This document shows, piece by piece, positions 35,146 through 39,790 of a stretch of 64,000 nucleotides of DNA (its first letter is position 1; each line of letters opens with the position of its first letter). The DNA comes from Macrostomum lignano (lineage: Eukaryota). The notes beneath the pieces were generated by a model, which was not told the DNA's origin, did no database searches, and was given only the letters and a program-made list of their open reading frames with translations. The DNA is taken from positions 310,001-374,000 of the forward strand of contig NIVC01000180.1 in assembly GCA_002269645.1 (NCBI GenBank). The letters run 5' to 3'. Both the position numbers and the translations under genes were made by a program.

Positions 35146-38100
35146 TCAGTCCTGCAATTTCAGGCGGGACAACACAAATATGATAAATTACTCTGAGTCC
35201 GAGACTTCTGGACTAGCAATCCACTGAGACTAGACTAGCAATCCAGTGTGACTAGACTAGCAATCCACTGTGACTAGACTAGCATTCCACTGTGATTAGA
35301 CTAGCAATCCACTGTGACTAGACTAGCAATCCACTGTGAATAGACTAGCAATCCACTGTGAATAGACTAGCAATCCACTGAGACTAGACTAGCAATCCAC
35401 TGTGACTAGACTAGCAATCCACTGTGACTAGACTAGCAATCCACTGTGAATAGACTAGCAATCCACTGTGAATAGACTAGCAATCCACTGTGATTAGACT
35501 AGCAATCCACTGTGACTAGACTAGCAATCCACTGTGAATAGACTAGCAATCCAGTGTGACTAGACTAGCAATCCAGTGTGACTAGACTAGCAATCCACTG
35601 AGACTAGACTAGCAATCCACTGTGACTAGACTAGCAATCCACTGTGATTAGACTAGCAATCCACTGTGAATAGACTAGCAATCCACTGTGAATAGACTAG
35701 CAATCCACTGTGACTAGACTAGCAATCCACTGATTAGACTAGCAATCCACTGATTAGACTAGCAATCCATTGTGACTAGACTAGCAATCCACTGTGACTA
35801 GACTAGCAATCCACTGATTAGACTAGCAATCCACTGATTAGACTAGCAATCCATTGTGACTAGACTAGCAATCCACTGTGACTAGACTAGCAATCCACTG
35901 TGAATAGACTAGCATTCCTCTGTGAATAGACTAGCAATCCTCTGTGAATAGACTAGCATTCCTCTGTGAATAGACTAGCAATCCACTGATTAGACTAGCA
36001 ATCCACTGATTAGACTAGCAATCCATTGTGACTAGACTAGCAATCCACTGTGACTAGACTAGCAATCCACTGATTAGACTAGCAATCCACTGATTAGACT
36101 AGCAATCCATTGTGACTAGACTAGCAATCCACTGTGACTAGACTAGCAATCCACTGTGAATAGACTAGCATTCCTCTGTGAATAGACTAGCAATCCTCTG
36201 TGAATAGACTAGCATTCCTCTGTGAATAGACTAGCAATCCTCTGTGAATAGACTAGCAATCCACTATGACTAGACTAGCAATCCACTGTGAATAGACTAG
36301 CAATCCACTGTGAATAGACTAGCAATCCACTGTGACTAGACTAGCAATCCACTATCACTCACAGACGAAGAGCTGCCGTCCTGAACGAGCTGCAAACACG
36401 GAGGAGGCTGCGCCGGTCTCCTGTGCCCGACTGTCTGCTTTGCGCCCGACCGTGATGCAACCAGGCCGCGAGGCGGGCGCTTTCTGGCCGCAAGTGGCAG
36501 CTGGAGAGGCGGCTGCGCATAATTCATCTGGCTGGTGACTCCCGCCACTGGGGGCCTGGGAGGCTTCTGCCAAAGGAGTAAAGGGGGGCTGATTGGCAAC
36601 TTTTCAAAGTAGGTATTGACTGAGCACTCCTCACGTCAATACAGGATTGACTGAGCACTCCTCACACCAATACAGTATTGACTGAGCACTCCTCACGCCA
36701 ATACAGAATTGACTGAGCACTCCTCACATCAATACGTATTGACTGAGCACTCCTCACACCAATACAGTATTGACTGAGCACTCCTCACACCAATACAGTA
36801 TTGACTGAGCACTCCTCACGCCAATACAGAATTGACTGAGCACTCCTCACATCAATACAGTATTGACTGAGCACTCCTCACACCAATACAGAATTGACTG
36901 AGCACTCCTCACGTCAATACAGGATTGACTGAGCACTCCTCACATCAATACAGGATTGACTGAGCACTCCTCACGTCAATACAGTATTGACTGAGCACTC
37001 CTCACGTCAATACAGTATTGACTGAGCACTCCTCACGTCAATACAGTATTGACTGAGCACTCCTCACGTCAATACAGTATTGACTGAGCACTCCTCACGC
37101 CAATACAGAATTGACTGAGCACTCCTCACATCAATACAGTATTGACTGAGCACTCCTCACACCAATACAGAATTGACTGAGCACTCCTCACGTCAATACA
37201 GGATTGACTGAACACTCCTCACATCAATACAGGATTGACTGAGCACTCCTCACGTCAATACAGGATTGACTGAGCACTCCTCACGTCAATACAGTATTGA
37301 CTGAGCACTCCTCACGTCAATACAGTATTGACTGAGCACTCCTCACGTCAATACAGGATTGACTGAGGACTCCTCACACCAATACAGTATTGACTGAGCA
37401 CTCCTCACGTCAATACAGGATTGACTGAGCACTCCTCACACCAATACAGTATTGACTGAGCACTCCTCACGTCAATACAGGATTGACTGAACACTCCTCA
37501 CATCAATACAGTATTGACTGAGCACTCCTCACGTCAATACAGGATTGATTGAGGACTCCTCACACCAATACAGTATTGACTGAGCACTCCTCACGTCAAT
37601 ACAGGATTGACTGAGCACTCCTCACACCAATACAGTATTGACTGAGCACTCCTCACGCCAATACAGTATTGACTGGGCAGAATTGGGTGTGATGCGCCAA
37701 GGTGTCTACAGTCCTCCTGCGAATATTATCAATAGTTTGATATTTTTACTTCAACTCGTACCTGCGATCGCAGCAACTCGCGCGGCAGGCCCCCGGGCTT
37801 CCTGGAGGCCAGCGGGCAGTTCTGCAGGGACAGCAGAAAATCCCGACTGTAGCAGATTCTCCTGCCGCTGCCCGCCTGCTGCTGCTGCTGCTGTTTCGCA
37901 GCCGGCACCGGCCGAAGCACCCGGAACAGCCCCTCATTGTGGCCTCTGCGCCGCTGTCCAGTCGGCTCTCTGCTATCCAAGCCGCTGCCTTTTTCGTCCG
38001 AAGACGCCCCGGACGAGGGCGCCGATTCGGGCCGCTCAGTGGCGCACATTTCGCAGCCCGGTCGGCGCCACCTGTTCCTGAAGGTGCACACCGGGCAGTC

Positions 38101-39790
38101 CCAGGTGCGCTGCGGCTGCTTGGCCTGTCATGAGGGGGGGGATACCAGAGTCAGTCAACTGTAGTCGATCGCCTACTGAAGAGTAGCAAGAACAGAATGT
38201 GAAGCGAATCTCTTATCGAATGCCTACTGAAGAGTAGCAAGAACGGAATGTGAAGCGAATCTCTTATCGAATGCCTACTGAAGAGTAGCAAGAACGGAAT
38301 GTGAAGCGAATCTCTTATCGATTGCCTACTGAAGAGTAGCAAGAACGGAATGTGAAGCGAATCTCTTATCGATCGCCGACTGACATTTGAATAAAGATTT
38401 TAGCGTGTGAGGCCCCAGCTCAGCGGTTACGACCAGTTGATTGACAACTTGCCAGCTTGCCGGCGGGGGCTTCGAGCAGCCTGCACATGGATACGTACGC
38501 AGGTGCAACAATCACATATGGCGTTCAGCGGCCCTGCACTTACATAATTGTAATAATTGTCAAGCATGCAGGCCCTACATACGAGTACTCTGTGATTTCC
38601 AGCCAGTACTAATAGGCTTAACTGCTGTTCCAACCACTTACCACAGGCTCCATGGCAACGGAAACCGTTGCCGCGGGCACAGCTGGACTTGGCTCAACAT
38701 CCTCTTTTGCTGGTGAAGCTTCTGGCGTCGCTGCAGGCTGCGGATCGCCGAGCACGTACAGGTGCACCGGCTGCGTCTCGCTGACCGCCCCGAGATCCTT
38801 TAAGCACCTGGGGAGCAACAATGATGTCGGAGTTTTGCGTGGTTGGAAGCAAAAAATCGGGATTGTACTCCATGAAGGCTGGCCCATTAACGGGGGATCT
38901 GGGAGGCTGGCCCAGCGCAGCAACTGAGGATCTGGGAAGCTGGCCCAGGAACTGCGGATCTGGGAAACTGGCCCATTAACTGAGGATCTGGGAGGCTGGC
39001 CCAGCAACTGAGGATCTGGGAAGCTGGCCCAGGAACTGAAGATCTGGGAAACTGGCCCATTAACTGAGGATCTGGGAGGCTGGCTCAGCAACTGAGGATC
39101 TGGGAGGCTGGCCCAGCAACTGAGGAATCTGGGAGGCTGGCCTAGCAACTGGGGATCTGGGAGGCTGGCCCAGCAACTGAGGATCTGGGAGGGGCTGGCC
39201 TAGCAACTGGGGATCTGGGAGGCTGGCCCAGCAACTGAGGATCTGGGAGGCTGGCCCTGCAACTGAGGATCTGGGAGGCTGGCCCTGCAAATGAGGATCT
39301 GGGAGGCTGGCCCAGCAACTGAGGACCTGGAAGGGTGGCAGCAGACCAGTAAAAATTACCGGTCGTCAGAAGCCAGCAGCCCGCCTGCGATCCAGCACTG
39401 CCGTCCGGGCGGTAGGTCCCGAGCTCGAGCCGCCACCCGGGCCCGCAGCTCGCCAATCCGAGTGTCGCCGCGCGCCATCAAGCGGAGCAGCTGGCGCTGC
39501 CGGCCGCGGCCCTCCAGGGCTACCGGCAGGGCGAACCAGCCGTCATCCAGCAGCGACCGCCGCGCGACCACCGGTGATTCTTCCTGCTGCTGCGGCATCG
39601 CCAGTGGAGGCGGCGCAGGCCGGATGTCCAGCTGGACGTGCCGTTCGCAGAGCAGCCGCGCTTGGCGAGCTGCCTCCTCGGCGTCGCCTGACTTGATGGC
39701 AGCTTCAAGTCGGGCCGCGGCTGAGGAGACAGCTGGCCACCAGTCAGCAGCAACGCCCTTGGAAGCTGCGGTGGGACTGGGAGGCTCCAG
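35146..39790 (-). CDS. SHARPIN: SHARPIN-like LUBAC adaptor (LTM-UBL-NZF) with a C-terminal eIF4E-binding motif; start codon not found in the genome
   Basis: Exons 39360-39790, 38642-38807 and 37762-38124 are well supported; 36363-36566 and 35146-35151 (D-stop) are tentative. All are frame-consistent. LTM ARLEAAIKSGDAEEAARQARLLCE; UBL ..[69 protein letters not shown]. No RBR. Confidence 0.78.
35208..36355. repeat. 22-bp minisatellite (gactagcaatccactgtgacta) in SHARPIN-like intron
   Basis: Tandem copies. Confidence 0.95.
36614..37675. repeat. 31-bp hairpin-unit minisatellite (gtattgactgagcactcctcacgtcaataca) in SHARPIN-like intron
   Basis: Tandem copies; each unit is an internal inverted repeat. 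Confidence 0.95.
38168..38375. repeat. 51-bp unit x4 in SHARPIN-like intron
   Basis: gcctactgaagagtagcaagaacggaatgtgaagcgaatctcttatcgaat. Confidence 0.9.
38878..39335. repeat. 28-bp minisatellite (gctggcccagcaactgaggatctgggag) in SHARPIN-like intron
   Basis: Tandem copies. Confidence 0.95.

Follow-up and report, generated by a model that had tools for sequence, protein, structure and literature searches.

The stretch of DNA analysed here, hereafter the window, covers 64,000 nucleotides of the genome of the flatworm Macrostomum lignano (contig NIVC01000180.1, positions 310,001 to 374,000). It contains on its minus strand, from 39790 to 35146, a SHARPIN-like gene of five exons, whose 389-codon open reading frame (ORF) runs through AG/GT borders of consistent phase. 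The encoded protein is made of two parts: an LTM-UBL-NZF core (N-terminal 231 residues), of the type seen in accessory subunits of the linear ubiquitin chain assembly complex (LUBAC), and an intrinsically disordered C-terminal part of ~160 residues, carrying an eIF4E-binding module of the type known from 4E-BPs (proteins that bind eIF4E). As judged from the sequence, this chimera of a LUBAC-accessory core and a 4E-BP-derived module is a genuine fusion of domains, with solid statistics behind it. The features of the gene, all on the minus strand, are the following.

39360..39790, exon 1: LTM and first part of the UBL; placed by splice signals and by an in-frame stop lying upstream
about 39718-39611, LTM: Pfam PF25393, E 1.3e-6, 28.7 bits for a cut-off of 27.5
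38642..38807, exon 2: end of the UBL (..QPVHLYVLGDP..) and a Pro/Ala-rich linker
37762..38124, exon 3: NZF, 55-residue disordered linker with poly-Q, canonical eIF4E-binding motif, elbow and linker
38029..38106, NZF (RanBP2-type zinc finger): four Cys, ubiquitin-binding signature T213-F214 and M225
37765..37863, 4E-BP-type module RRICYSRDFLLSLQNCPLASRKPGGLPRELLRS: Pfam eIF_4EBP, PDB matches, module profile
36363..36566, exon 4: C-terminal disordered tail KPPRPPVAGVTSQMNYAQPP...DGSSSS
35146..35151, exon 5: GAC TGA, i.e. the final residue D and the stop codon

Gene model and splicing

A first-pass annotation, made from the letters of the window alone, had given the NZF exon with its right coordinates, frame and peptide: exon 3 (38124-37762) is 363 nt long and begins and ends in phase 0, and both its acceptor (catgacag/GCC, the slash marking the border) and its donor (CAG/gtacga) are canonical. 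The best database match of the protein is PAA46902.1 of NCBI (BOX15_Mlig004010g1, Macrostomum lignano), 93% identical. L001, the locus from which it comes, runs collinear with the window, in its minisatellites too, and has the identical five-exon structure; its exons, once spliced, yield PAA46902.1 residue for residue. PAA53162.1, a third copy, does not differ from this second one. Exon 3 measures 375 nt in L001, by indels of +9 and +3 nt that both respect the frame. The M. lignano annotation derives from a genome-guided assembly of RNA-seq reads, in which trans-splice and poly(A) sites, mapped by experiment, set the gene ends (PMC5730564); thus the exon joins, including exon 3 and its frame, have transcript support in the paralogue.

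It could be argued that exon 3 or its frame lies outside the translated mRNA, or that the window copy is an unexpressed duplicate. The transcript support indeed comes from the paralogue and not from the window copy, M. lignano has many redundant copies (PMC5730564), exon 3 is a multiple of three and might be skipped without a break of frame, and the locus has older UniProt models that contain frameshifts and run on into the next gene. We nevertheless hold such an artefact for very unlikely: the RNA-seq-derived model of a 93% identical copy has the same junctions and frame, the splice sites and the ORF of the window copy are intact, and models from the independent ML2 assembly contain peptide stretches identical to it. 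The base composition argues in the same direction, with 55-73% GC in the exons against 18-46% in the surrounding DNA (18-26% upstream of exon 1).

The fusion with the downstream HOIL-1-like gene that appears in the older UniProt models (P0002, P0004-P0006) is rejected in view of the stop of exon 5, GAC-TGA, which is the same in L001; there NCBI calls the SHARPIN-like and HOIL-1-like genes as two separate genes.

The LTM-UBL-NZF core

SHARPIN and RBCK1 proteins align collinearly with the core from the LTM to the NZF (E 2e-9 to 3e-5, HMMER search of 1.84 billion representatives). The NZF is matched by Pfam Zn_ribbon_RanBP with E 1.9e-5, its 24.3 bits being slightly under the cut-off of 27; its columns W207, C209, C212, T213, N216, C223 and C226 are invariant in the SHARPIN/RBCK1 alignment. 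An AlphaFold2 (AF2) model built with an alignment of 22 relatives—it replaced a poor single-sequence model of pLDDT 45—gives to LTM, UBL and NZF a pLDDT of 82-95 (UBL 82-95, NZF 85-95), the LTM being predicted as a helical hairpin above 90. The best Foldseek matches of this model are 5Y3T_A and 5Y3T_C, the chains of HOIL-1L and SHARPIN in the trimeric LUBAC core; 4DBG and 5X0W come next, with the UBL domains of HOIL-1L and SHARPIN. The UBL fold superposes on those of HOIL-1L and SHARPIN with a template-modelling (TM) score of 0.81-0.88 and displays the conserved Q-x-W-x-x-G motif. Between the two copies LTM-UBL shows 9 synonymous and 2 non-synonymous changes, that is a ratio of non-synonymous to synonymous rates (dN/dS, omega) of 0.08; by this count it is under strong purifying selection.

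The first-pass annotation had named the protein SHARPIN-like. The LUBAC-accessory layout bears this out, orthology to SHARPIN less so: we detected no PH-like domain, tblastn with SHARPIN N-termini giving nothing below E = 1 (a weak test if the domain is divergent), and RBCK1 scores similarly. The acceptor at the start of exon 1, the in-frame stop 15 nt upstream and the AT-rich DNA beyond suggest that the protein probably begins at the LTM. The RBR catalytic module is absent from the protein, according to Pfam and the gene model, and present in the separate downstream gene. The protein is thus best described, from its domain content, as a LUBAC-accessory-type paralogue with a "SHARPIN/HOIL-1L core", SHARPIN orthology not being established.

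Anatomy of the predicted eIF4E-binding module

The peptide of exon 3 that carries the module is RRICYSRDFLLSLQNCPLASRKPGGLPRELLRSQ (37863-37762). Its centre is a canonical helix, Y291-S-R-D-F-L296-L297-S-L-Q300, in which YSRDFLL (37851-37831) had rightly been recognised as the canonical eIF4E-binding consensus; the helix matches the extended consensus too, and the homology searches described below, by hidden Markov model (HMM) and by phmmer, go further. The motif was first described as lying just after the NZF: it shares indeed its exon and its frame, but it comes 55 residues later, beyond a Ser/Gly/Gln-rich linker. After the helix stand an elbow, N-C-P-L, and a linker, A-S-R-K-P-G-G-L-P (together NCPLASRKPGGLP). 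In the AF2 model the whole tail is disordered except for one helix placed exactly over RDFLLSLQ, as expected for a 4E-BP segment that folds upon binding.

Two elements could provide a second contact, on the lateral surface of eIF4E. The pair L316-L317 falls at +25/+26 from the Tyr, in ungapped register with L79-L80 of Drosophila Thor; the mutation of Cys78/Leu79/Leu80 of Thor to alanine lowered eIF4E binding and the deletion of residues 76-84 abolished it (PMC4164784). Further on, PVAGVTS (36551-36531; VAGVTS is 327-332, at +36) resembles the non-canonical IPGVT of vertebrate and M. lignano 4E-BPs. It is displaced by an insertion of 12 residues relative to 4E-BPs (RELLRSQ/KPPRP), which spans the exon 3/4 junction, and scores as a weak second domain of the HMM (-2.1 bits). 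L316-L317 and/or VAGVTS could therefore be proposed as putative lateral contacts, the sequence not deciding between them.

The elements by which 4E-BPs are controlled are missing: the protein has neither the two TPGGT priming sites nor S/T-P sites of the Ser65/Thr70 type, and RAIP and a C-terminal TOS are lacking as well; the helix is preceded by QQQAGSGRR, and the C-terminus reads ..LVQDGSSSSD. The 4E-BP of M. lignano (P0147), by contrast, possesses all these mTORC1 control elements (..QTPGGTIFGTTPGGTR.., ..TEFEMDI). The protein has no Pfam match to MIF4G or HEAT domains either, and it ends 99 residues after the Tyr of the motif (Y291 of 389).

Homology of the module to 4E-BPs

The bare pattern Y....L-phi is common: we count 43 matches in the 74,322 amino acids of the six-frame ORFs of the window, and 21 in 61,045 amino acids of related proteins. 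The extended consensus Y.[RK]..L-phi..[RKQ] is found once in the window ORFs, at the module, and not at all in the relatives. More decisive are the profile searches. Positions 46-74 of the Pfam profile eIF_4EBP (PF05456) match the module; E is 4.9e-4 when the peptide is searched and 0.013 with the whole protein, the scores staying under the gathering cut-off. When the 116-residue tail is searched by phmmer against 177,635 PDB sequences, the four matches are all human 4E-BP1 or Drosophila Thor; their alignments cover the crystallised region that contacts eIF4E, and their individual E-values are marginal (0.09-0.6). The same search with the paralogue against 1.84e9 proteins retrieves P0103 and P0106 at query positions 282-320, outside the NZF, with whole-library E-values of 3.4e-4 and 3.6e-4, and both are members of the eIF_4EBP family (E 6e-20 and 8e-34). 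Finally, we made an HMM of the eIF4E-binding modules of real 4E-BPs, 28 in number: the protein reaches 41.3 bits (39.8 for a domain of 30 positions), while the maximum among 20,000 composition-matched shuffles is 14.5, and nothing else in the window exceeds 9.7.

That a short linear motif arose by chance or convergence in a disordered tail, unrelated to 4E-BPs or eIF4G, is hardly credible in view of these data. The abundance of the bare pattern and the marginal E-values of single PDB matches would allow it; but some 30 residues are similar in ungapped register, the shuffles argue against an artefact of composition, the whole-library E-values (about 3e-4) concern real 4E-BPs among 1.84e9 proteins, and rare residues are common to the module and to the species' own 4E-BP. 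On these scores, the module is homologous to 4E-BP modules and is not a chance YxxxxLΦ.

Among single-module proteins the closest relative, found by profile search, is precisely this M. lignano 4E-BP, PAA68211.1 (P0147): 18/29 identical residues and a BLOSUM62 score of 98, including an unusual Cys for Ser in the elbow (CPLA) and GLPR. For human 4E-BP1 the figures are 12/29 and 61, for human eIF4G1 11/29 and 48. The ..KPGGLP stretch had at first been likened to eIF4G; the human eIF4G1 segment quoted for this purpose was exact (PDB 5T46_B), and spacing and KPxGLP are indeed shared with it, but the M. lignano 4E-BP is closer. The resemblance with eIF4G is thus real while reflecting, by these alignments, a motif of the whole family, and the module is of the 4E-BP type. 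Its acquisition from the lineage's own 4E-BP appears most likely. This acquisition is not recent, since the DNA of the module is 66% identical to the M. lignano 4E-BP gene. Intron positions give no support to this origin: the M. lignano 4E-BP gene has a single exon.

The searches also brought out small 4E-BPs of 123-165 residues with two complete eIF4E-binding modules in tandem, YDRDFLI..IPGVT and YDRDFLL..VPGL, together with TPGGT sites and a TOS-like end: P0103, P0106 and P0133-P0136 (loci L002 and L003), from the JGI metatranscriptome 3300052651 and the SRA run SRR28981372. We know of no description of such two-module 4E-BPs. Their alignment had suggested a degenerate second module in the tail of the SHARPIN-like protein, NYAQPPLQLPLAARKRPPRGLV (36459-36524, minus strand; PLA-x-RK-x-P..GL); it was rejected as unsupported, 304 of 5000 shuffles reaching its internal-repeat score.

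Conservation of the module: function or relic

The first-pass annotation knew of no such motif in vertebrate SHARPIN, and the same holds for the relatives scanned: the module is absent from 121 other NZF/UBL proteins retrieved by the full-library search, vertebrate SHARPIN and RBCK1 included, the best HMM score being 3.4 bits with no match to the extended consensus. In database searches it is seen only in the M. lignano copies. Between these copies a core of 20 residues, GRRICYSRDFLLSLQNCPLA, is identical and the flanking linkers differ; dS is about 0.05, which is too low for a dN/dS on the module.

We favour, with some reserve, the idea that the protein may act as a tethered 4E-BP, devoid of mTORC1 control elements, which would bring eIF4E to a LUBAC-type ubiquitin module. 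Several observations weigh against it. We found no orthologue outside M. lignano in the databases, so that the finding rests on a single species. The module region shows 1 synonymous and 4 non-synonymous differences between the copies, all located in the variable linker, and the dN/dS of the module versus the parental 4E-BP gene is ~0.74, a value drawn from 29 codons only. The contiguous LP-x-IPGVT of the parental protein is interrupted by the 12-residue insertion, which makes the non-canonical contact uncertain. The Pfam eIF_4EBP scores, 20.4 bits for the peptide and 15.8 for the whole protein, stay under the gathering cut-off of 24. The 28 modules of our HMM were gathered with a profile that included this tail, which introduces a mild selection bias, though all of them are Pfam eIF_4EBP. 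Lastly, the HOIL-1-like protein encoded next to the gene has no Pfam LTM match.

Some of these points would suit a relic of fusion: the 4E-BP-derived segment would be genuine by descent but would have lost eIF4E binding, leaving a mere ubiquitin-binding adaptor with a neutral tail. The lack of an excess of synonymous change in the linkers and module region, the dN/dS versus the parental gene, the displaced IPGVT-type motif, the disappearance of all 4E-BP regulatory motifs and the Pfam score can all be read that way. On the other hand, no residue of known importance has been lost in spite of the 66% DNA identity: Y, R (+2), F (+4), L-L (+5/+6), Q (+9), N-x-P in the elbow and LP are all in place; the 20-residue core stays identical between copies while its flanks vary, with indels that keep the frame; and a Leu-Leu pair sits exactly at the non-canonical position of Thor. 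We consider a relic unlikely, without dismissing it, and keep the tethered 4E-BP as our working proposal.

Translation start

Exon 1 starts directly after the acceptor tctattttacag. No in-frame ATG is present in the genome before M64, and a start at M64 would remove the LTM. PAA46902.1 is deposited as 5'-partial and begins with the codon that directly follows the acceptor of exon 1. The spliced leader (SL) of M. lignano ends at its 3' side with ...TTGCATG (PMC8629364), and the AUG of flatworm SLs serves as initiator (PMC9851317); joined to the CTG GAG of exon 1, the SL AUG is in frame. We infer that translation of the SHARPIN-like gene probably starts on this AUG, with which the trans-spliced leader ends at its 3' side. 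The 4E-BP gene of M. lignano (locus L004, 6001) is likewise 5'-partial: it begins at a splice acceptor without genomic ATG, as the SHARPIN-like gene does at 39790 (acceptor 39791-39802). These 5'-partial starts at an acceptor in both genes are consistent with translation starting from the SL AUG.

A related observation was made just upstream of the start codon of the HOIL-1-like gene, where cttgcatgCTGATCTCC (~31935-31952, minus strand) holds TTGCATG, the heptamer with which the spliced leader ends; it is here that some of the older protein models start. It could be a coincidence, or a trace of assembly or annotation.

Neighbouring genes and repeats

The surroundings of the gene comprise the following features.

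25369..31929, minus strand: HOIL-1/RBCK1-like E3 gene; UBL, NZF, RING1-IBR-RING2 and RBCK1-type C-terminal Cys/His tail
32003-33689: minisatellite, 20 bp x 84
35211-36353: minisatellite, 22 bp x 53
36613-37679: minisatellite, 31 bp x 34
38876-39339: minisatellite, 28 bp x 16

The HOIL-1-like gene is complete and lies directly downstream, on the same strand; it matches Pfam Zn_ribbon_RanBP, IBR and RING, and is called separately in L001 as a gene for a product of 516 residues. Its product is 31% identical to the SHARPIN-like protein over the end of the UBL and the NZF, which indicates an old tandem pair and not a recent duplicate. The HOIL-1-like E3 is a probable functional partner of the SHARPIN-like protein.

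This vicinity raises the question of whether the module serves primarily to bring eIF4E, or a protein of the 4EHP class, to an RBR ligase for ubiquitination, the protein then being a substrate adaptor and not mainly a translational repressor. A complete RBR E3 is encoded next door, the protein has the LTM and UBL which in mammals hold HOIL-1L, SHARPIN and HOIP together, the RBR ligase ARIH1/HHARI targets 4EHP (PMC3940038), and HOIL-1 has been tied to PABPC1 and to ribosome surveillance (PMC13179138). Yet the motif is a canonical one as in 4E-BPs and differs from the YxYx4L-phi type that the 4EHP-selective GIGYF proteins have, and the lack of a Pfam LTM in the neighbour tells against this role as well. 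As a distinct explanation we judge it improbable; it overlaps in part with the tethered 4E-BP, both needing the binding of a protein of the eIF4E family.

Long minisatellite arrays with periods of 20-51 bp fill nearly all the introns and intergenic stretches of both genes (26000-39339), and in the paralogous locus L001, which is 90-95% identical, arrays stand at these positions too. One 27-bp minisatellite (27514-28151, minus strand), inside the ORF 26753-28171, is open in frame (HSDGVTFQR x ~23) and reads, with no stop between, into the exon that encodes RING1 in the HOIL-1-like gene, which creates a mechanical ORF of 472 residues; judging by the exon start in older models, this repeat is probably intronic. 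On the other side, upstream of the SHARPIN-like gene and divergent from it, lies a transporter gene of the MFS/SLC22 type (43508-46043, plus strand; MAPVHMEYEEVLEHIGSLGRYQIVLFNLL...); L001 has this neighbour too, with Pfam Sugar_tr/MFS_1.

Proposed mechanism and significance

According to the tethered 4E-BP that we favour, the tail would, in the manner of 4E-BPs, fold along eIF4E on its dorsal and lateral surfaces, excluding eIF4G while being free of mTORC1 phospho-control. The NZF would bind ubiquitin chains, and LTM and UBL would dock to a LUBAC-type E3, for which the adjacent HOIL-1-like RBR is the obvious candidate. The outcome may be either that eIF4E is sequestered at sites of ubiquitin signalling, or that eIF4E/cap complexes are handed to the RBR ligase. 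One step further, the protein might be a ubiquitin-gated 4E-BP, by which the availability of eIF4E, or the ubiquitination of eIF4E/cap complexes by the adjacent HOIL-1-like RBR ligase, answers ubiquitin-chain signalling and not TOR; this extension is tentative, and we are rather doubtful of it.

Cap-dependent translation has its main switch in the proteins that bind eIF4E, which classically are controlled through phosphorylation by mTORC1. As for the subunits of LUBAC, they are known from signalling in immunity and cell death, to which ribosome stress has more recently been added. Our literature searches (SHARPIN, NZF or LUBAC with eIF4E-binding motifs, and the gene identifier) found no description of such a protein, nor any direct physical bridge between signalling of the Met1/LUBAC type and the initiation of cap-dependent translation; a ubiquitin-gated 4E-BP, if true, would be such a bridge. 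The fusion suggests that the reading of ubiquitin chains and the capture of eIF4E can be usefully coupled, and would offer an experiment already made by nature, as well as a compact construct of about 390 residues that can be tested and whose halves are separable, in an animal where RNA interference and transgenesis work. It shows besides how modules of short linear motifs move between proteins, a 4E-BP segment of 30-40 residues being found on an unrelated scaffold with its regulatory sites lost. Its reach is limited so far to paralogous copies in one species.

Comparison with known systems

With 4E-BP1-3, Thor and the M. lignano 4E-BP, the protein shares the helix YxRxFLLxxQ, the N-x-P-L elbow and the P-x-x-LP linker. 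It resembles 4E-BPs also by the disordered context, where helix propensity is restricted to the motif, and Thor in particular by a hydrophobic pair at 25-26 residues from the Tyr, a candidate non-canonical element, the GVTS element standing further on. It departs from them in several ways: 4E-BPs are small stand-alone proteins, whereas the module forms here the tail of a 389-residue LTM-UBL-NZF protein; the TPGGT, Ser65/Thr70-type S/T-P, RAIP and C-terminal TOS (FEMDI) elements of 4E-BPs are not found in it; and the 12-residue insertion separates LP from (I/V)xGVT, the module remaining under the Pfam gathering threshold. With eIF4G, as seen in human eIF4G1 (PDB 5T46), Y and KP-x-GLP are equally spaced, and both proteins have YxRxFLLxxQ and KPxGLP; but the elbow NCPLA is of the 4E-BP type and not FIFAS, and the MIF4G/HEAT and other regions of eIF4G are missing.

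As for the other half of the chimera, SHARPIN has in common the LTM, the UBL and a C-terminally placed NZF ending in ...RPGCEMC..RP, without catalytic domain. It differs by its PH-like N-terminal domain, not detected in the M. lignano protein, which has besides an extra tail of ~160 residues bearing the 4E-BP module. HOIL-1L/RBCK1 has the same LTM-UBL-NZF order and no PH domain, and the tandem with a true HOIL-1-like gene suggests that the SHARPIN-like gene originated by duplication; the RBR module and the RBCK1 C-terminal tail are lacking in its product, while the neighbour has both.

The closest parallels for the combination itself are 4E-T, Cup, Mextli and GIGYF1/2, in which a canonical-plus-auxiliary eIF4E-binding region is joined to another functional module. 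ARIH1/HHARI offers a precedent for a ubiquitin system of the RBR type acting on the cap-binding protein 4EHP; it was reported to bind 4EHP through RING1 and not through a YxxxxL-phi motif (PMC3940038). HOIL-1 itself acts on PABPC1 and in ribosome stress (PMC13179138). None of 4E-T, Cup, Mextli, GIGYF1/2 and ARIH1 carries an LTM, a UBL or an NZF, the three domains to which the 4E-BP module is joined in M. lignano.

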